A stretch of DNA of 63,719 nt, filler included, from Perkinsus chesapeaki ATCC PRA-425 (lineage: Eukaryota; Protista; Perkinsozoa), in the NCBI GenBank assembly GCA_013115145.1. It is 14 parts of 14 records of this genome, joined end to end, with 100 filler letters (N's around TTAATTAATTAA, not from the genome) between each part and the next. Parts side by side here need not be neighbours in the genome. Positions count along the whole stretch, not along the records: positions 15,297 to 27,420 come from JAAPAO010000825.1; 13 more parts are not named here. One strand, 5' to 3'. Positions 15,297 through 27,420 of the stretch are shown here, piece after piece (within the stretch, counting starts at the first letter, position 1; every line of letters begins with the position of its first letter). Below the pieces are notes generated by a model. It saw only the letters and a program-made list of their open reading frames with translations, was not told where the DNA came from and ran no database searches. The translations under genes and the position numbers were made by a program.

Positions 15297-15457
15297 AATA
15301 AGACTGAATATATCTATTGAATAAGACTGAATATATCTATTTAATACGACTGAATATATCTATTTAATAAGACTGAATATATCTATTTAATAAGACTGAA
15401 TATATCTATTTAATAAGACTGAATATATCTATTTAATAAGACTGAATATATCTATCC
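15297..15457. repeat. Minisatellite, 23-bp unit AATAAGACTGAATATATCTATTT x7
   Basis: Direct reading. Abuts the gap and lies in a predicted intron. Confidence 0.95.
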
Positions 15458-15464
15458 CTTCTCT

Positions 15465-16200
15465 CACTCTTTTTCCTTTGCTATTCTTGCTCTTTCTTCC
15501 TCCCTTTCCGCCTTAAGCTTCATGGCTCTTTCCTTTATCTTATCATTTTGGCCATCCGTTGTCTCTCTGCGCTCCTCTAGTTCTTTCGCGTACATCTCCC
15601 TAAAACCAATAAACTCATTTCTACCCACCAAAGCCTCTACGATCCTACTGAAAGTGCTACACAATACCGGAGGCCCCGACCAAAAAGTACCGCACTGTAC
15701 GGATACGCAAGCGGAATCTTGCTACTCAAGGATGGACATATTATAGTCTATATTTATTTATTAATTCTATAGTAATACATAGATATATGGTTGTTTATAG
15801 TAGATCTAATACTATTATTTATCATAATATAATCTATTATTAATTTATACTATAATTATAATGATATCTGGTATAATGAGCAAAGACTCCTCTCCGAAAA
15901 CGGTATGAATTTCAGACTCGGTCTTTCCAATCGCCCTCCACGGAAAAGCTGACCAGAAATAAACACTTCCTCAACTTGTAACAGTCAGGGTTGCATTCGA
16001 TCTCAAATTTACACCTTCCTTGGGTTCCAGCTTACTCTTCTTTGTTCAATAGCTGTGAAAGCTTAGCTCGTCTGTGATCAAGAAAAAGCTGCCGGCGTTT
16101 GCGAAGATCAGCGATGCGCGCCTCGACCCTTTGCTGACGATGCACCTGATCACGGAGCCATTCAGCGCCACATAAGTGAGAATTGTCCTTAATGCGGAGA
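15465..16200 (-). CDS. CFAP53/CCDC11-like coiled-coil flagellar protein, partial (two exons)
   Basis: Exons join as ...RIADLRKRRQLFLDHRRAKLSQLLNKEE|EMYAKELEERRETTDGQNDKIKERAMKLKAEREEERARIAKEK, resembling the CFAP53 N-terminal region. Recalled similarity only; coiled coils are promiscuous. Confidence 0.4.
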
Positions 16201-17331
16201 AAATACAATTGAAATTTCTACCCGAGACCAAAAAAGAAAACTTGGATTTGGAGGAGTCGCAGCTCGAAGCTAGCTACTAAGACTCGGAACTCGGAGCGGT
16301 TGAGCACTTGAACGTGGCCCATTCAACGGGCCCTATGGGACCGCTTATCGGTAAATCGATAAACAATTGCTTCATAGCTTCATCGTTACGAAGCAGTACG
16401 CCGACAATAATCTATTAATTCCATTAACATCAGACACTGTCTTTGGTTTCCATAAAAACCTCCGCTGTAAGTCATGTGCGTTCAATCTGGTATGATTATG
16501 TACGTGTCACTGACACGGTGTCAGGAAGTTTGAAAGGCAGCACCGCTTTGCGGAAAGACTCCAAAACCGCTCCCTCAATGTGGCTGAAGAATTCAAAGGT
16601 GGTCGATCTCCGGCTTGAAGATGATCGATAGAGGTTTTCCCCGCAAAAATTCCAGTGCTAAATTCTGGAACCATCCTAATGAAGCATCATTCACCCATTC
16701 AGTCTCTATGAATTCACGTTTCTACCAGCTACCTGGTTACCTCGGTTAGTTCAAGCTTCACAAGAGACTGGCCGAGTTGGATCCGACAATCTCTAAGCTT
16801 TCCCATACTCACCTGCCCCCCTTTATTCTCCCACTCGGCCAACTTCTGTAACGATGAATTCTCAATTGCCGCGGATATTCGATCCTCGTATCTGTTTGAC
16901 AAGCATCCTCAGCGAGCGAGTGTTCGTACTGAATGGAGAGGAAGAGGCGCCTTGTCCTATTATGCACAGTGAAGGTTAATAAAAAATCACTCTTTCATTT
17001 TCTTCTTTCAGAAATACGAAATAAAGCTTGTAAAATGCAACACCGCGGAATCGAACTTGCGACTATCTCCAACATAACGCTGCGATCCAAGCTGCTTACA
17101 GTCTTTCCTGCTTCTGTCGCTGAAGGATGAGTCGATCCGGACGCATTCGCGGCATAGTTAAAAATAGTGAAATCCTTCAGAGCACAACTTCTGAGTTTCC
17201 ACTTTGCCACAACGCAGCGTCTGCTATGCAATCGAGACGTAGGGCTTTCCAATCGAACATGAGGCGAGCGATATTTCCAGTTAATTGCCGTCTCGATAAT
17301 ACATGTAATCAACGTCTCTTATTTGGTTATA

Positions 17332-18775
17332 ATGTTGTTATCATTCCTATTATGGTTATCTATTGGTGGACTGTATGATCTACCTTTAATATATTATGCT
17401 CTATCAAGTGCTAATGATCATGCCTATGCTCCTCGTTCCACTCAAGGCCAATACCCACCTGATACGGTGCCGAGCACACTACCCGTCGGTAAGTACAAGA
17501 GCTCAAAGACGGTATTCTGGTTGAATGTCGGCAAGGATAAGAAATGGGAACTCGGTATGACCTTAAAAACGGGTGAGCGGTCTATTGCGTTTCATCCGCT
17601 GATACAAGAAAAGGGCGAAGATTACATCTGCTACAAGCATAAAACCCAGGAGGACGAGCCTGGAATGCTTCGATTCTTGTCACATAACACCGGGGAGACA
17701 TATAAACTATCATCAATCGTTATATGCCATACGACAGATGGAAGGGTCTGGTTGAAGCCACCCGGGAGAGATGATATTACGCTTACTATGGAGGAAACGG
17801 TTACGCGGAGAATCCATCCTAAACCAAGCACGTTTCGTGGGGCCACTAGAGATCAGGCGTTGCAGCTCCTTAAAAGAAGGGGAAGCTCACAGAAGAATGC
17901 TGAGGCTACTAAAAGGCGTAAGAGTCCAAATGTGGCAAGTGGTAGTGGTGGACGTGAGAAAGAACTGCTACGCCATGCCATGCTGGAAGCGGATATAAAA
18001 CACAGCGAATCGCTCACACAGCCCGCAGTTCGTGGGCTATCAAAAGGGGGTGATAATGCAGGAAAAGGTATACCCAATCATGCTACAACCCCTCAGGAAG
18101 ATGATACTGCAGTAAGGAACGACGCTGTGACTGATGGTTTTTTTCCAAAGAATCAAGCTATAAGCGTGGGATGAAACTTCCGGAGACTTCCACTGGTCAT
18201 ATCCACACGGAAGAATATAGCTTCTCTGGCGTTTCTGATACATTCCCGCTTGGCATCTACGTACCGGCAGAGCTCGACTACAGTCTGTGGGTCCACAATG
18301 ATAACCGCTGCGATATAAGAAAACAGGCAGGTGGTCATTTGTACAATGTATCATTCATATTAGACGATTGGTGTACAAGGGCAGAAAATGGACATCACTC
18401 CTGCTCTGGGCCCGTCAAAAAGCGGTAACGCGGTGGAGACTACCCCTTCGCAAACATTAAGGAAGCAGGTGTCAGCTGTGGCACACGATAATCCAAAGGT
18501 GGAAGGATGTGGAAGGATGGGAAAAAGGGGGCATGCAAAAGGGAAACGATCTGCAGGTACCCGAAGTTTCCCATGATACCGCACCAACAAAGCCTGGAAC
18601 ATCAGATCTCGATGAACTACTTGAAGAACTGCTACAGGAGGATGATCTCCCCTCTGATCCACCTCATTTCGAACAGGCTTCGAATGAGGCAGGTAATCAC
18701 ATTTCTGAGGATGACGAATCACTATTGGGCGACGTGACCTTCGATGATTTATTAAAAGCATGGGAAGAGGAATAG
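17332..18775 (+). CDS. Predicted secreted protein with two PxGxY domains, bipartite NLS and acidic tail (introns 18112-18164 and 18425-18468 predicted)
   Basis: ATG 17332 MLLSFLLWLSIGG; LPVGKY; KRR-x10-KRRK. GT-AG introns restore frame into ORFs 18171 (FPLGIY) and 18509 (LDELLEELL...DDLLKAWEEE*). Confidence 0.65.
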
Positions 18776-19293
18776 CGGTTGTTCAAAGGGTTAGGAGGAT
18801 AATCAAGTAGTTGCTGTCACAACTTGGAAGCAACCTTTCAACCTAAGGATGTTAGCATGTGTAATACTACGGCATACTGATACTTTGTGTTGTGTATAGT
18901 TGAAGCATTACTAAGAAGGGCCCTTACTGAAGAGGAGGTGCATTAACGTTTCCTAATCATTATACCTATCACAGCTGTAGGGAAAAGCATGGTTCAACTG
19001 TGACAGCCGATGATCTGGATGGAGTGGGTGCACAGGTTTTGGAACAGTATGCCAAGGAAGGTCGGATTAGTCTGGATATGCTGGAACCATTCGGTGTCCA
19101 CTACGAACATTGCCAGGAGGCGGAGGAGTGCGAACTTCTACCACCTCCCCAAACCTCGATCCAGTTTGTCGCCAGAGCTCGTCTGCTATGCAATCGAGAC
19201 GTAGGGCTTTCCAATCGAACATGAGGCGAGCGATATTTCCAGTGAATTGCCGTCTCCATAATACATGTAATCAACGTCTCTTATTTGGTTATA

Positions 19294-20103
19294 ATGTTGT
19301 TATCATTCCTATTATGGTTATCTATTGGTGGACTGTATGATCTATCTTTAATATCTTATGCTCTATCAAGTACTAATGATAATAAGTTTACATATGCTAA
19401 ACCCCAACTACCCATTGGAGAATATGTGAACGATGAGCGGGGACTAGAACTAAGCATTAAACCAGGAAACCGATGCATACTCAGCGGGAGGCTTCAAGGT
19501 GGTTCGTTTCGTATGCCACTTGAACTTGTGCCATCAGAAAGAGCAAAATCGTATGTATGTTACAACGACCCGCGAAGGAGCTGGGCATCCTTGGACTCGA
19601 CCGTTCGACGACAGGGTTTCGGAATATTTACCCAACCGTCGCTTCTGAATGGAACAGTAACTCTGTGTCACTCGTTCGAAGGGAGCGTATGGATGAAGCT
19701 ACCACAAGGTTACGAGAATATCAACTTAACTAATAAAACTTCTAAGCGTAAAGAACACCCGGCACAAGGGGAATTAACCAAACCAGTGGAGCATTCTCCA
19801 GCATCAGCGAGGACTGGTGCAGAATTCCATCAACCCCTTCCAAGCCACAGCAAATCGAAGAAGCGTCGCAGTCAACCAGCAGAGCCAAAAAGTGCGCCCA
19901 GTGCTGCAAGAATACTTCATCAACATGACAAATCGGCCAAGCTATCATCGCCGATTGAAGGAGGAGCGGAACGACAAATGGATGGGAAAATGAGAGAAAC
20001 TTCTGACCTCGAGAATACACCCAAAACCGGGATAGATCTCCTACTGCTTGCCGCTGAAACATTGGATAGAGAAGACACGAAGAAGGTCGAGGGGAAGAAT
20101 TAG
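19294..20103 (+). CDS. Predicted secreted protein, paralogue of 17332 gene, with NLS and C-terminal amphipathic LLLLAAE motif
   Basis: Near-identical signal peptide; LPIGEY; SKSKKRR; IDLLLLAAETLDRED near the C-terminus. Intronless. Confidence 0.7.
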   Translation: MLLSFLLWLSIGGLYDLSLISYALSSTNDNKFTYAKPQLPIGEYVNDERGLELSIKPGNRCILSGRLQGGSFRMPLELVPSERAKSYVCYNDPRRSWASLDSTVRRQGFGIFTQPSLLNGTVTLCHSFEGSVWMKLPQGYENINLTNKTSKRKEHPAQGELTKPVEHSPASARTGAEFHQPLPSHSKSKKRRSQPAEPKSAPSAARILHQHDKSAKLSSPIEGGAERQMDGKMRETSDLENTPKTGIDLLLLAAETLDREDTKKVEGKN

Positions 20104-20149
20104 TTAGAATTGAGGGAAGAATTAGGAGAAGAATTATAATTGATGGAGA

Positions 20150-22883
20150 CTTATTCATTAGTATGTTGTCCGTGCATTGATCTGTATTGTGTATAGTTTA
20201 TTTATGGCAAGGAAAGACACGTTGATGTTGGCCGGAAAATAGTAACCGTCCCTTTCAAGGAAGCACTGGAATGGTAGAAATTACTCCTGCGAGATGTTCA
20301 CTCGGCAATATCGCCGTATTTCAATGGACTCAGTATCTCTATCAGAGTGGGGGTGGTAGAGTTAGGACTGAAGTTGTAGTATAATGTAGAGTTAGGACTG
20401 AAGTTGAGAAGATAATGAATAGACTGGATACCGGCAGAGAGGCGGAAGCCTTACCTTTACAAATAAACAACAGAAAAATGTATTCCATTCGACCAAGGGA
20501 AATCCTCGAGGGACTCTTTCACTTGAAGACTACACTTTAATATAACCGCATCGTGAACACGTGGCATGATGTGCGATTGGTGATGTAAATTAAGGAACAT
20601 CATCATCATTAGAGTCATAGTGAAGGGAGAAGGTCCTCTAGAGCCCTCCTTCACTCCTTTAAAGTGAAGGGAGAAGGTCCTCTAGAGCCCTCCTTCACTC
20701 CTTTAAAGTGAAGGGAGAAGGTCCTCTAGGGCCCTCCTTCACTCCTTTAAAGTGAAGGGAGAAGGTCCTCTAGAGCCCTCTCTCGCTCCACCACAGAGGG
20801 AATTCCTCCAGCCCTCGCTCCTCAAGAAAAACTCTTGCCTATTGGCTTGATGCATGCCCAACCCGATTCACTAAATTATAATGTTATAAAATTTCCTTCG
20901 AGAACATTTACGTCCCAAAAAAATTCCAGAAAAAATTCTCAACAAGCAAGAAGTGGAAGTGAATTACAACACAATCACCTTCTAAGGTTCGGAAACGGTT
21001 GATGATGATGATGCTGCTCTCACATATAGACAGACACTCTGTTATCCAGGGTGGGCTGGAGCTTGATAGAACTATCGTGAACTCTTGTCAGGTCGATGTC
21101 GAAATCACCTGGTGATACAAAAGGGAGCTCGAAAACGTCGTAAGTGACTTCAACCATTCAGAAATCACTGAATACCTCGTCTTTCGAAAAGAAATACTTC
21201 ACCTCGGTAAAGGTCAAGAGGACACCCGTGCCAAGAACTACCCGAATTTCGGGTCTCGAAATGGCTCACAATTTCGTGGCGCGTGACAAAAGATAAAAAT
21301 CCATTACTGAATGCGCACAATGAAGATACTATAGGATATTCCCGATGTTCGGAGTGGCCTCGCCGCGTCCCTGAATAAATTCGCCTACTACACCTCACAG
21401 TTCCAAAATCGACAAAATTCAGTAGAATTTCCCTCGCCAGAATGAATAGAAATATGAAGTTATATTAAATGTTCCTCCGTTTACCCTGAGAAGAGATAGC
21501 TTGGCCAAGTTTCATCATCACGGACGAATCTGGGTGCGGCCCATGGTAGACGATATAGGTCTCTACAGGGACCTTCCGAGCGATACATCTGATAAGGGAA
21601 AGTTACTCAGAAATGATAGTGTCGAAACCAGGAAATAATAATGGTCCTTTTCAGCATCACCAAAAAGGCGAGGCTCTCCCCCGTTGGTTTCTCGCACCCC
21701 ATGCGGCCAGAAATCTCCGAGATGCACACCATCCAACCTAGCCGGTATTGATATATACACGTGTGCGTATAAGACAGCTCAGAAATACAGGTCGAGATTT
21801 TTGCCACTATCTCCTCCTATAAATCTGTTCCCCGTGGCGGGTACGCTACATGCGTATCGATGGTACGCATCTCATCTGCCCCCAACCGATTCATAGTAAT
21901 ATTCTTACTGAGTGATAATTTCCGCAATGGGACCATCAATCGCCTCTCCCAACGGTAAAGCTGGATACTCACTCTTCGCACTACCAAGATTATACCTGAA
22001 GAAAATACCTCTGCCGAGGATGGAACCCGAGACCACCCTGGAACTCACACTATACCGTCGACTCCTCTCGTGCTGCTAACCTCTCTCGTAGTGGCAACCA
22101 CAACTTCCTTTGGCTTAAGCTTCTCCCACATTATTCGATTCACGCTGCTGCTAGAGCATCTATTCGGTATAGTCAACACAGCAGCACTCGAAGATGAGGG
22201 CACATAATCAACCCTCAGTGAATCCACGGGGCCTGACAACGATGACAACCAAGCTATCAAGGGACGAATTATGGGTATGAGAGAAATGCAGTCCGAATTT
22301 TTGCTGTAGGAAAATACATCTTAACGCCTGTAAAAGTGTACCATATCTCCGCCTCTGATAACTCTACTTCTCATGAGCCTCCGTGAAGTGAGAATGCGTA
22401 GATGACCACACAAGTCGAATGAGGAAACCCAATGCAAGACAATATCGCTGTCCTCGGCAAACCACGTGGGCGGCGTCATATTGATATTACGACATTAAAA
22501 ATTTGATCATTTATCATGTCCCAACAAGCAGAGAATTGAACTGAGAACGTTAGTTCAAATGTAAGAAGGCTTCTTCTTCCTGCTGCTGCCTTACCTCCCA
22601 CTTCGAGGCCACTAACTCCGCAACGTACCGCTGCTGCTGAGCCGCTACACACCAGTAACCTCTCAACTGGCTTCAATGCATCACCACCGAACATATGCAA
22701 TGATACCGACTTCTCAACCTGATAAGATACGCTCCAGAGCTCAGCCGTAAAGATACAAATCACCTCAAGTTCCTCACCATCGCTGCTTTCACTATCGCTC
22801 ACTATCGGCTCCAAAGTTTCCAGGAAATCGTTTATCATGATTTCAAAGAAAACTAGCAAAGGCTCTCTTGGGTTGGTAACCAA
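20150..22883 (-). CDS. Hypothetical multi-exon protein; boundaries uncertain
   Basis: Series of minus-strand exon-like ORF pieces (22476-22883, 22045-22260, 21563-21760, 21165-21398) separated by short GT-AG-like spacers. No motif recognised. Confidence 0.35.
20619..20780. repeat. Minisatellite, 44-bp unit x3.6, each unit self-complementary
   Basis: Unit AGTGAAGGGAGAAGGTCCTCTAGAGCCCTCCTTCACTCCTTTAA; AGTGAAGG(G)AG pairs with CTCCTTCACT. Confidence 0.95.
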
Positions 22884-23101
22884 CGTCGGAATATATCGCT
22901 TTTATAAAATTCCGTTCCGAAAATTTCCACACCAAACTTTTTCCGAATATTTATCGGAGTCTCCCTGTCTACCACAAGGTGCTACTATTCGGCTCTAAAT
23001 ACGACTGGATCATCCGACATATGTCTGAAATCTGATCTTCATTTTTATTAAGAATTGAACAAGTCCGAGAACCCCCCGGACCCTACACTAGAGACCCTAA
23101 T

Positions 23102-23186
23102 CAAAATTTCTGGGAAATTTCAACAAAATTTCTGGAAATTTCAACAAAATTTCTGGGAAATTTCAACAAAATTTCTGGGAAAATTC
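23102..23186. repeat. Minisatellite, ~22-bp unit CAAAATTTCTGGGAAATTTCAA x4
   Basis: Direct reading. Confidence 0.9.
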
Positions 23187-23387
23187 CAGCTTCTTCGCAG
23201 GCGTTCCTCCAAAAACTCCAAATGAAGAGTGAATTTATCATTCAGCAAATGCAAGGCGAAAAACTGCATCTTCAAACCAACACTAAATCAGCCAATCCCG
23301 CAACAGCCTTTCATGAATTCAACAAACCCTTCCACAGTAGAAACAAATATAAACTGCATCAGTTCGCAATATGACAGGAACGTGAAC

Positions 23388-26300
23388 TTATTTATTTCGT
23401 CGCTTTCCTTTTTTATTTTTCCCACCAACTTCCTTTACTGTGGCATGTCCCATCTCCTTGATATGAGCAAACAGTTTAGTTCGGCTGGTGAAACTGACAG
23501 CAGGACACTGCTAAATTTAATTATTATATAATGCTTTGATTTCTTATTCACAGCATCAGTGGGAAATCGAATCTAATTATTAGCACTATATCTATTATGC
23601 AAATGAATACTTATCAATAATAATCAATAATAATCAATAATAATCAATAATAAACAATAATAATCAATAATAATCGATAATAATCGATTATTATTCATTA
23701 TTATTGATTAATAGTACGACTAATGGTTACTTCGGCAACGGTAAGCATACAGTGCATCAAAACCTTACACAATACCATAAATAATCAGTACCATAAACTA
23801 TATTATTTTATCAAAATTTCTAATACTATCTATCAGCGCAGAAATATGAAAACCGCCTAATTCAACCCGCGAGCGATCATTGCTCTTTTGTAAGGCGCTA
23901 TATCACCCTGAATTCACAATCTCAGACCACACCCCATTATCCTCCCTACAATAACAACTTCTTACCATTCTCCACACACATCACAGCGTTGGTCCCCTGT
24001 CCCTTGACTCTGAGAAACTGCCTTCGCTGCCTTATCTTTCCGTCTGCGCCTGTGACTCTTAGGCCCACTAGCTTCTTCTGCTGTTTCCTCTTCCGCTGGT
24101 TCGGGTGGTACCGCAGACTTCTGAAACAGGTAAGAATAATTTGTCATGTTAGTGAATCAAATACACCTAAAAATGCCAACGGGACAGCGATTAAATAAAC
24201 TACCAAAATTCATACCTCCATTACAACTCTACAGTAGTGCGCCAGATCCAATTGCTGATTCCTAGTAAGTATAATTATTATCTAGGTAACTCCATGAACC
24301 CATAATAACATCTTACAAAGTGTCTACATCCTACACTGTCAAACGTAACGGTTTTGTAGTAGCTGTTGAAAAGATGACATCCCTCCTATCAGTGATGGGC
24401 TATGTCTCAGTATATGTGATAGGCTATCACACTAAGTATCGTATCGACAATACTTTATGAAATATATAATTAACATTATCAATCAACAATTAGCCATCGG
24501 CCTACCTCTTCCTCCAGGCCCTCATTCTCCAAATCCTCCTCACTCCTCACAAAAACACCAAAGGCAATCTCGTCATCAGAGGACTCCGAATCCGATGAAG
24601 CCTCCCCATGCTCGATCTTCTCCCACGAGGACGAATCATTCTCGCTTCTCTTCGCATCAACAAACCCTTCGATCAACTCGCTATTATCTTCCACTTCTAT
24701 CGACACCTCGCTGGCAACCTCCAAAATATCAGAACATGCATCGCTTCGCTCCGCCTTCTCTTCTTCCTCTTCATCAACAGATTTCTCCAACACAGGCGAA
24801 CTCTCTTCGCTTGAGCCGGCCAGACTTTCCAAAAAGGCGTCGTCTTCCATCAGTGTCCTCCTCAGCTTTTCGACCGCCTCCTAAATAGATACTCCTAGAT
24901 GACTTGACAATATTTTATATGAACTAAATGAGTCATATTAATAAAAATGGTAACAATTTTCAACATCGGCCAAAAACGTTGCTCGTTGGCATCGAACGGT
25001 CCATCTGAGCTTGCGAGTGGTAGCTCTATCAGATCTTCTGTGGACATTTTTTTCACCGGACTGTATCACAGTCTCAATTGATATGTTCCTTTTCCAAACG
25101 TAAATGACGTTCTCATGCGTCATCCTTTTATTTCTATTTCTTATAAACACTATACTCGCCTCACTCGTGAAAGCGCATTAGTATAACCAGTACAGAAGAG
25201 AAGATATTCCTAACCCCCGCGAACATCAGTCAATGCAGCAGGCCATCCCCTCACTTTATGTTTTTTAGATTTTTCATGGTTCGCATATGCCTTGTGGCTC
25301 TTAAACACCTTCTTGCACGCTGCACACTCGTAAACATCTTGAACCTAATTAATATTATTAAAATAACACCCGTGGGATTCGAACTCACGACCTCCTCTTC
25401 CTCCTCTTGCTCTTCGTCCTTCCCCGATCCGCCATATTTCCTCGCCATCGCCGCGACTTCTGCTTCATTCTCTGCCCATCGCTTCTCTTGTACCTCCCTA
25501 AACATTCAACCTCCTTATACTTCATTGTCATCCCTCATCTTCATCAAGTCAGAACACAACTACGGAATTGCTACTGTAATAGATGCAGTAAGCTGCTTCC
25601 ACAGCAGTAGATTCCTACATCCATGCCCAGGCCAGAAGCATATACGATACTAAAAGGTTCAATTGTCAACTGAATACTTCATTTCTAACAGGATGATTTA
25701 GGTGCTTTAAACAAGCTAATTCATCCACCTAGTTCCCAATCCTTATCGGTTCATTCGCTTATGTCTCCCGACTATTTCCCACTCACTAGTATTGGGGGGC
25801 CACTGCCCACAGCCACCCCAGAATCGAATCGAACAGTACGGCCTTCCACCAATCTTAGATGTGCCAAACTTATAAGATAATCATTTCACAGCATATCATC
25901 TCCTCCTGCACTCTTTATCATTTCTATTTCACCATTTAAAAACCCATCGCCACACCCCTATCACCTCGCTCTTGCCCTCCTCTCCTTCTTCAACTCCTCT
26001 TTCCTTTTCCTGTCTTCCAATCGCTGCTGGGCCCTGATAATAATAATAACCCACAACAAATAGACCATAATAATATTATCAAACATATCCCGCCGTTCTG
26101 AGCCATGCTACCACACAGAGCCTGGGAGCTTCACAAAGAACATAGTAATACTATATCAATGCATCTCAAAGTGGTGAGGAGATACCCAAGCATTGCGACA
26201 GGGAATATTGTGTCGAGGAGCAGCAGTCAGCCCTTAGTACACTTTTTCCGCCTCTTCCTCATCGATCTTTCTCTGCTTCGCTACTCTAGGGTCCCTATTA

Positions 26301-27270
26301 CGGACGTATTCCACCAAGTGACGTACCTACCATCCGACAAATTCGACACAAACTTTGTCCCCTTCGAAAAATATTTACTCTCAAATGATGTATTTAATCA
26401 TTCTATATGCGTCACCTATTATGCGATGATACACCATTAAAGAGTGAGGCACAAAGAGCAAGCGACAATTGATAAATGCACGCTTGAACTGTTGCCGTAC
26501 TCTTCCCTATCACTTTATCATTATAATCCTTCTTTTTACTCTTCCTTTCCCTACTATTTTCCTGCTCCATAGCCCTCCTCATCCTCCTACCCTCCGCTTG
26601 ACGGACATCCCATTTATCATACCATCCAAATGACAAACCAGACGAGAACGCGGACCAGAAACTGCCGATCAAAAAATGATAAATGACCATTAGAAAATTG
26701 ACTGATGAAAAGCAGTAATGCGGTAAGCTTAAATAATTACGGCAATCAATGAGAGTTTGTGTAATAACCTATAATTCTCTAAAAGCCTCCTTTGCTATAT
26801 ATTATATAGTATATAATACATCCTTAGTATTACCCCCATCATTTAAAATACTCCCCCCTTTGCTATATAATACATCCTTAGTATTACCCCCATCATTTAA
26901 AATACTCCCCCCTTTGCTATATAATACATCCTTAGTATNNNNNNNNNNNNNNNNNNNNNNNNNNNNNNNNNNNNNNNNNNNNNNNNNNNNNNNNNNNNNN
27001 NNNNNNNNNNNNNNNNNNNNNNNNNNNNNNNNNNGTATTACCCCCATCATTTAAAATACTCCCCCCTTTGCTATATAATACAGCATTAGTATTACCCCCA
27101 TCATTTAAAATACTCCCCCCTTTATATTACCTATAAAACTGCTTAACAGTGGGGTCCCAAGGTGAATCAGAGTAACCAAATGTTGGGAAATCCTCCAAAT
27201 CAAAGCGAGTGTCAAAACCTTCACATTCCCGATGTGCTATATCAGAGAATACTGACCGATACCTGAGAAA
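23388..27270 (-). CDS. DNAJC21: DnaJ subfamily C member 21 / Jjj1 (60S maturation co-chaperone); N-terminal J domain lost at gap
   Basis: Exons FPTFGYSDSPWDPTVKQFY, GWYDKWDVRQAEGRRMRRAMEQEN, VRNRDPRV, zinc finger YECAACKKVFKSHKAYANHEKSKKHK, and a second finger CDVCGEW|FTSRTKLFAHIKEMGH ending ...KRRNK* at 23388. Confidence 0.88.
23613..23690. repeat. 10-bp tandem repeat ATCAATAATA in last DNAJC21 intron
   Basis: Direct reading. Confidence 0.9.
26810..27125. repeat. Intronic minisatellite, 54-bp unit, spanning the plain N gap
   Basis: GTATTACCCCCATCATTTAAAATACTCCCCCCTTTGCTATATAATACATCCTTA starts at 26827, 26881, 26935, 27035 and 27089. Confidence 0.95.
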
Positions 27271-27297
27271 CCAAGACCTTTACCAACAACTATTTAA

Positions 27298-27420
27298 TTG
27301 TTAAATACAATACTTTCGCCTATAAACTATCCCTATCTTATTGTTAAATACAATACTTTCGCCTATTAACTATCCCTATCTTATTGTTAAATATAATACT
27401 TTCGCCTATTAACTATCCCT
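27298..27420. repeat. Minisatellite, ~43-bp unit x3 at contig end
   Basis: TTGTTAAATACAATACTTTCGCCTATTAACTATCCCTATCTTA repeated with minor variants. Confidence 0.9.

Follow-up and report, generated by a model that had tools for sequence, protein, structure and literature searches.

Gene B, an open reading frame (ORF) at 19294-20103 on the plus strand of a window of Perkinsus chesapeaki DNA, is by its sequence a short, intact-looking member of a tandemly repeated Perkinsus family. The window is the whole stretch of DNA under study, 63,719 nucleotides including filler, and the analysis was confined to positions 15297-27420, the piece that comes from JAAPAO010000825.1. The reading favored here, which is considered probable on balance, is that gene B encodes a modular and probably secreted protein with tail motifs that dock partner proteins. 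A first-pass annotation had proposed that the gene B protein is secreted, carries a nuclear localization signal (NLS) and a motif like the Sin3-interaction domain (SID) of Mad, and could repress host transcription. The leader, the basic cluster and the SID match of this copy were upheld; the SID is not conserved in the relatives, however, and gene B is an atypical member of its family. The resemblance to the Mad SID is most likely coincidental, a feature of a single copy's version of a family helix.

Family membership of gene B

Gene B matches a profile hidden Markov model (HMM) of the family with an E value of 1.5e-58 over profile positions 1-163 (hmmsearch). A second member, paralogue A, is located 2 kb upstream on the plus strand; its main ORF encodes 280 amino acids (17332-18174) and features the same leader, an LPVGKY barrel, a KRRK cluster and the motif KELLRHAMLEAD. 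Paralogue A matches the family profile HMM with an E value of 5.3e-68 and is 33% identical to gene B over the first 168 residues (BLASTP, E 1e-24). A Pfam scan of these two window proteins assigned them to no family.

Homologous proteins were found in two Perkinsus species. A word-based search of 5.8 billion proteins returned only the hypothetical P. chesapeaki proteins FOL47_004164 and FOL47_004166. When a profile was compared with 1.84 billion cluster representatives, it matched three hypothetical proteins from P. chesapeaki and two from P. olseni, along with one bacterial repeat protein that is regarded as spurious. The homologues FOL47_004161, FOL47_004164 and FOL47_004166 from P. chesapeaki and FOZ63_026716 and FOZ61_002493 from P. 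olseni are all annotated as hypothetical or uncharacterized, and literature searches on Perkinsus secreted proteins and effectors yielded no account of the family and no described host-targeted effector. So far as found by these sequence searches, the family appears to be restricted to Perkinsus (P. chesapeaki and P. olseni).

The family genes occur in tandem, same-strand arrays. One P. chesapeaki contig carries five copies inside 25 kb, all on one strand, and each P. olseni locus has at least four. The clusters of the two species are probably syntenic, because an EF-hand gene adjoins the family cluster in both. Apart from the 5′ block described below, no other part of the piece is similar to the 25 kb of P. 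chesapeaki sequence that was fetched.

The homologues share with gene B a leader, a barrel with the pattern LP-x-G-x-Y ... C-Y ... C-H-S-x-x-G-x-V-W, a basic cluster and a D-L-L-x-x-A-[AM] helix. Unlike gene B they are longer (360-550 aa), with two additional helices in the tail and an acidic C-terminal end, F-D-D-L-x-x-x-W. The three family tail helices are D-[LIV]-L-A-x-A-[AM]-x-x-A-G, E-[LI]-E-D-L-[IL]-R-x-L-[ED]-E and F-D-D-L-x-x-x-W, the third of which is located at the acidic C-terminus. The P. olseni homologues have a different tail instead, and they sometimes have two barrels. The C-terminal F-D-D-L-x-x-x-W motif recalls acidic aromatic motifs such as the Atg8-interacting or acidic-tryptophan motifs.

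The annotated introns of FOL47_004164 and FOL47_004166 (L001:7809-7868 and L002:6077-6139 of the fetched P. chesapeaki loci) are in frame and free of stop codons, and their translation aligns with other members. These genes are therefore most simply read from sequence as single ORFs of about 390-500 aa.

The P. chesapeaki annotation looks imperfect at these genes and at two other copies. A frameshifted, unannotated copy at L001:12652-13846 lies within the span of an opposite-strand PLD-domain gene, and the copy at L002:11771-12958 has apparently been annotated from an internal start, as a protein of 228 aa instead of 395. The P. olseni ORFs L003:10001-11659 and L005:10001-11518 each contain two tandem barrel domains. 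Small downstream P. olseni ORFs, such as L003:8793-9119, resemble detached C-terminal tails of neighboring members.

Architecture of the gene B protein

Gene B begins with an ATG, with an alternative TTG start at 19285, and encodes 269 amino acids that are followed by a stop codon at 20101-20103. The hydrophobic leader, the LPIGEY sequence, the SKSKKRR cluster and the SID-like peptide IDLLLLAAETLDRED at 20032-20076 are all found in this ORF where the first-pass annotation had placed them. The annotation had also described a signal peptide, a disordered tail, an NLS and a gapless match to the Mad SID; the evidence given below bears out a signal-peptide-like leader, a tail modeled as disordered, an NLS-like cluster and the gapless match. 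A search for RNA evidence listed no run that contains the stretch, and two runs labeled with the same species gave zero contigs on it, a result that speaks neither for nor against expression.

The leader, MLLSFLLWLSIGGLYDLSLISYALSS, spans aa 1-26 (19294-19371, plus strand) and is signal-peptide-like by hydropathy and inspection. It is the sole hydrophobic stretch of the protein, with a Kyte-Doolittle maximum of 2.4. The hydrophobic core is LLSFLLWLSIGGL, 13 aa in length, and by inspection either S-Y-A or A-L-S could supply small residues for a cleavage site. The leader is nearly identical among copies, as 17 of its 26 residues are invariant across all seven copies from the window and P. chesapeaki. 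The P. olseni leaders keep LSYALTS and have a basic residue, R5.

The leader is followed by a folded domain. An AlphaFold2 model of gene B, built with a six-sequence family alignment, features a beta-barrel at aa 39-150 (19408-19743, plus strand) with a predicted local distance difference test score (pLDDT) of 88-92. The barrel begins at LPIGEY (19408-19425, plus strand, read from the sequence), its conserved residues include C89, Y90, H126, G130 and V132, and all of the family-invariant barrel residues are intact. A full-length P. chesapeaki member, L002:6001-7194, was modeled with an 11-sequence alignment, and the barrel reached a pLDDT of about 90 in both of these independent models. As modeled, the family barrel resembles small lipocalin- or calycin-like barrels in being an eight-stranded up-and-down barrel of about 110 residues, and it superimposes on them with an rmsd of 2.5-3.5 A over 75-94 residues; it is unlike them in sequence, with an identity of 5-14%. 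The best structural matches found by VIA-align are small lipocalin-like barrels with Z scores of 6.5-8.0. These include 3ge2_A from S. pneumoniae SP_0198 (Z 8.0, 79 residues, 2.5 A), the C-terminal domains of PBP-like enzymes (1ei5 and 2qmi, Z 7.2-7.4) and Treponema Tp0751 (5jk2, Z 6.7), along with many lipocalin-like rows at Z 5.5-7.4. A Foldseek search of the PDB with the barrel returned nothing at E <= 1e-3, the Atlas shape search gave a TM score by query of at most 0.34, and the best score in the ESM Atlas feature search, 0.89, was below the meaningful level. Since Z scores of 7-8 are common for unrelated models and Foldseek returned nothing significant, the modeled barrel may be called calycin-like by shape only, a likeness that allows no functional inference.

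Residues 152-269 of gene B are modeled as disordered, with a pLDDT below 50. The basic cluster SKSKKRR (19849-19869, plus strand) is located in this tail, and its KKRR, aa 189-192, fits the monopartite NLS pattern K-K/R-X-K/R. The position of the cluster is kept throughout the family: a K/R cluster is found between the barrel and the first tail helix in every member, with KRRK, KKRK, KKQK, RRNRR and KKAK in relatives and several such clusters in P. olseni. From its sequence SKSKKRR could equally serve as a dibasic processing site. The peptide IDLLLLAAETLDRED, an amphipathic helix motif at aa 247-261 (20032-20076, plus strand), is located eight codons ahead of the stop, and AlphaFold2 places a short, low-confidence helix on it at residues 249-254 (pLDDT about 40).

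In the model of the full-length member L002:6001-7194, the tail is disordered except for exactly three helical islands. Their positions, residues 224-235, 343-355 and 388-397, match those of the three tail motifs that are conserved: DLLARAMREAG, ELEDLIRELEE and, at the C-terminus, LNELFNAWKE / TFDDLLxxW. The sequence [ST]-F-D-D-L-x-x-x-W was observed in the acidic stretch of this member at residues 388-397, and the second and third helical islands are also present in the window at 18590-18772.

The conserved tail helix

A core with the pattern [DE]-[LIV]-[LV]-x-x-A-[AM] is found in every family copy that has a tail. The core helices are EDLLARAMREAG, EDLLHRAMREAG and EDLVARAMREAG in P. chesapeaki copies, NDVLATAAASAG, LDILAIAALSTP, LDILATAAMLPP and MDILAVAALSTE in P. 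olseni copies, KELLRHAMLEAD in paralogue A and IDLLLLAAETLD in gene B; the P. chesapeaki helix peptide is GDGEDLLARAMREAGLNEE. Outside the family the pattern is scarce. The regular expression [DE][LIV][LV]..A[AM] matched one unrelated gene only in 87,859 residues from six-frame ORFs of the fetched Perkinsus loci, and it matched 0.25% of shuffled gene B tails. Because the core is present in all tailed copies and scarce elsewhere, the gene B helix is very probably, on sequence grounds, a variant of the family helix core D-[LIV]-L-x-x-A-[AM].

The Mad/Mxd SID is an amphipathic helix that binds PAH2, a paired-amphipathic-helix domain of Sin3 that forms a four-helix bundle. The Mad SID consists of N8-IQMLLEAADYLE-20, and the consensus for the Mad family is phi-Z-Z-phi-phi-X-A-A-X-X-phi-n-X-X-n (PMC1557813). 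The peptide IDLLLLAAETLDRED fits this consensus at 15 of 15 positions with no gaps. The second type of PAH2 ligand motif, A[AV]X[VA][LV] (PMC1557813), was considered and rejected by inspection for gene B, which has AAETL, and for its relatives.

The conservation of the motif across paralogues and orthologues, a check that the first-pass annotation had named, gave a different result for the full SID than for the core. None of about 14 relatives fits the SID consensus, and only positions 2, 3, 4, 7 and 8 of the SID are conserved among them. At position 1, where the consensus is phi, the relatives have E, N, L or K; at position 5, also phi, they have A or R; at position 11, again phi, A or T; and at position 12, where the consensus is acidic, G, P or D. 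The hydrophobic register of the family helix is 3-4-7-8 versus 1-4-5-8-11 in Mad. Because positions 1, 5, 11 and 12 are unconserved in relatives, Sin3 binding is not a family property, as judged from the sequences. The SID reading fails at the family level and survives only in the sense that an atypical member may have gained the motif in this one copy.

The fit of gene B to the consensus is rare for a single protein and is to be expected in a proteome. With typical amino-acid frequencies supplied by the analyst, the chance expectation for the consensus is about 8e-7 at any one residue position, which amounts to about 2e-4 for a protein as long as that of gene B and to about 8 per 10 million residues. 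It occurred in 1 of 200,000 shuffled gene B tails, and the same 87,859 residues contained no second match. The match in gene B is thus rarer than chance for a single protein, and the rate per position still predicts several matches per proteome, for a pattern that is degenerate and a match that was picked out after the fact.

Paralogue A and the C-terminus of gene B

Paralogue A has an acidic C-terminal tail, DLDELLEELL ... TFDDLLKAWEEE*, at 18461-18772 on the plus strand, which was identified by three-frame translation and with a tail profile HMM (E 1.8e-23). The frame of this tail differs from that of the main ORF, and the two are separated by a gap at 18175-18460. Because the tail is in another frame, paralogue A contains either an intron of about 310-500 nt, unlike the single-ORF P. 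chesapeaki copies, or a frame break that would make it a broken gene. There are 23 candidate GT-AG pairs that would leave the frame open, as judged from the two-exon joins, which were examined for frame openness.

The family tail profile was searched on both strands of the piece and found no tail for gene B, including in the 7 kb downstream. Gene B therefore ends after a single tail helix. Its leader, barrel and basic cluster are retained along with one helix, and the two further helices and the acidic C-terminus are missing.

Evaluation of the readings

In the favored reading, the protein would enter the parasite secretory pathway by means of its leader, the barrel would bind a small ligand or a surface, and the tail helices, which are of the fold-on-binding kind, would dock partner proteins at the parasite-host interface. 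Several observations weigh against this reading. The gene B leader has no basic residue ahead of the hydrophobic core and has an Asp at position 16. The Z scores of the barrel fall in a range that is common for unrelated small barrels. When the gene B helix and its flanks were compared with the motif profiles of each of the three family helices, the scores did not reach significance, with 134-247 of 1000 shuffles doing equally well. The basis for assigning the gene B helix to the first family helix is the core of seven residues. The multiple alignment also set the gene B helix opposite the second family helix. The acidic C-terminal part of the full-length members and of paralogue A is absent, so gene B could be a decaying copy instead of a working short form. 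Finally, the full 15-position SID match is rare, and the view that it is a coincidence is thus a judgement and not a demonstration.

Of the alternatives to the modular, secreted protein, decay survives best, although it is considered unlikely. Here a premature stop or a rearrangement would have removed the C-terminal third of a degenerating paralogue, and the SID-like string would be the drifted, functionless remnant of a helix. The 7 kb downstream contain no detectable family tail, the gene B helix is the most divergent in the family, broken copies are found elsewhere (the frameshifted copy at L001:12652 and paralogue A, which is split between frames) and the surroundings are rich in repeats. 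Against decay, gene B has 269 open codons, among them 119 tail codons with no stop, a run with a chance of about 0.003 by (61/64)^119; all of the barrel-invariant residues are intact, and the 5′ block is 99% identical to that of a P. chesapeaki copy.

A second alternative, which is rather less probable than decay, concerns the basic cluster. KKRR may be a dibasic Kex2/furin-type site at which the barrel and the tail are split after secretion, each of them then acting outside cells. All members have KR, RR or KK pairs at a matching position between the barrel and the tail, the protein has a secretory-type leader, and Perkinsus secretes subtilisin-like proteases. The long K/R runs of P. olseni members (RRKARKVARS and RRVKRAKKS), however, look more like NLS or nucleic-acid-binding patches. 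This alternative could hold together with the modular, secreted protein favored above; the role of KKRR is all that separates the two.

Mimicry of a host Sin3 ligand, in which the secreted protein reaches the hemocyte nucleus by means of KKRR and uses IDLLLLAAETLDRED to recruit host Sin3-HDAC and silence host genes, is very improbable. The complete consensus match and its rarity among shuffled tails favor it, as do the location of the motif on a short modeled helix in a disordered region and the conserved position of the NLS-like cluster in the family. The invariant core residues L4, A7 and A/M8 line up with Mad L12, A15 and A16, which we take, from Mad1-PAH2 structures, to be contact residues for PAH2. 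There is also a precedent in Toxoplasma, in which TgIST and TgNSM are secreted, disordered, NLS-bearing dense-granule effectors that recruit host corepressors. The gene B peptide is like the Mad/Mxd SID in its gapless alignment, its agreement with all consensus positions and its short modeled helix in a disordered context. The gene B protein is nevertheless unlike Mad: there is no homology, and the motif is at the C-terminus of a leader-bearing protein, whereas in Mad it is the N-terminal motif of a bHLH-Zip repressor. The positions that define the SID are not kept in the family of gene B, in which four of them vary freely and the hydrophobic register differs from that of Mad, and the one copy that fits the consensus is the truncated odd one out. 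Several such matches are expected by chance in a proteome. Additionally, a sequence search of the PDB with the gene B peptide returned no SID chain, whether from Mad or from another protein; in this search the 30-residue C-terminal peptide gave no match even at E 10, and the family profile returned noise only. To our knowledge, no machinery for export into host cells is known for Perkinsus.

Just as improbable is the broader proposal that the D-[LIV]-L-x-x-A-[AM] helix is a PAH-domain ligand throughout the family, with its most Mad-like version in gene B, and that the proteins are exported to mollusc hemocyte nuclei to recruit Sin3-HDAC or another corepressor. Dense-granule effectors of Toxoplasma that reach the host nucleus include TgIST, TgNSM, GRA16, GRA24 and GRA28. 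By analogy, the family may be likened to them in concept: in each case an intracellular alveolate would use proteins that pair a secretory leader with a long disordered region, an NLS and short linear motifs for recruiting host chromatin or corepressor complexes. It is unlike them in that there is no sequence similarity and the Toxoplasma effectors are without a folded barrel. The export of Toxoplasma dense-granule effectors depends on the MYR translocon, and we know of no counterpart of it in Perkinsus.

The conserved 5′ block

Gene B begins within a 159-nt block (19226-19384, plus strand) that consists of 68 nt upstream of the ATG and the first 30 codons, and that was delimited by a column-identity profile and blastn. 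The same block is found in paralogue A at 17264-17422 on the plus strand, and copies in P. chesapeaki are located at L001:7541-7700, L001:12581-12741, L001:17516-17675 and L002:11700-11859, to which the window sequence is 93-99% identical at the DNA level (blastn). This identity and the range of the homologues agree with a source in P. chesapeaki or a close relative, and so with the Perkinsus parasite that the first-pass annotation had supposed. In a comparison of six copies, taken from the window and from P. chesapeaki, the column identity is 0.87-1.00 within the block versus 0.2-0.5 just outside it. The identity falls to the random level within about 10 nt on either side, and the proteins beyond the block are about 35% identical.

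Two short elements are invariant in the block. A start-stop mini-upstream ORF, ATGTAA, is located at 19264-19269 on the plus strand, 25 nt ahead of the main ATG, and is invariant in 4 of 4 aligned copies. The sequence TTTCCAG at about 19236-19242 on the plus strand, which is a candidate spliced-leader acceptor, is found at the same offsets in paralogue A. The RNA fold of the block is modestly better than that of shuffled sequences (z -2.6), and an Rfam scan of the piece found nothing on the block.

In the P. olseni paralogues the leader sequence is different, no block with comparably sharp edges is seen, and the P. chesapeaki type of block has no match. Given this absence, an ancient, genus-wide RNA element was dropped as an explanation, and lineage-specific homogenization or the spread of a 5′ cassette is favored instead. 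The block may have its origin in gene conversion, in a mobile 5′ cassette or in constraint at the RNA level. In cone-snail toxins and Hessian-fly salivary proteins, the signal sequence is conserved and the mature part is hypervariable. The Perkinsus family is like them in that the 5′ leader and the signal-peptide coding sequence are near-identical and the mature parts are about 35% identical. It is unlike them in that the edges of the block are razor-sharp, 68 nt of untranslated leader are included and there is no such block in the P. olseni paralogues.

Surrounding sequence

No conserved gene was recognized in the piece besides gene B and paralogue A, and a tRNA scan of the piece found none. 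About 500 nt downstream of the gene B stop, a 44-nt unit is repeated 3.7 times with 98% identity (20619-20780). The units are internally palindromic (AGTGAAGGGAG...CTCCTTCACT) and form hairpins, and Rfam gave only sub-threshold microRNA-like matches on these repeats. Short tandem repeats with periods of 23, 22, 10, 54 and 43 nt are located at 15297-15455, 23102-23186, 23602-23685, 26810-26938 and 27290-27420. The GC skew is strongly negative from about 21800 onward.

Significance of the family

Perkinsus species cause dermo and perkinsosis, which are major diseases of oysters and clams. Sin3 mimicry would be striking if true, and it rests on one atypical copy; if the broader proposal for the whole family held, with export to hemocyte nuclei, these proteins would be the first effectors aimed at the host nucleus to be described in an alveolate parasite outside Apicomplexa. 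The 159-nt block bears on the co-regulation or homogenization of such families. The lineage-specific, amplified and probably secreted family, with its barrel, NLS-like cluster and three helices, is a candidate set for molecules of the parasite-host interface, and if the modest reading of secreted proteins with partner-binding motifs is true, it would provide defined peptides for pull-downs from hemocyte extracts.

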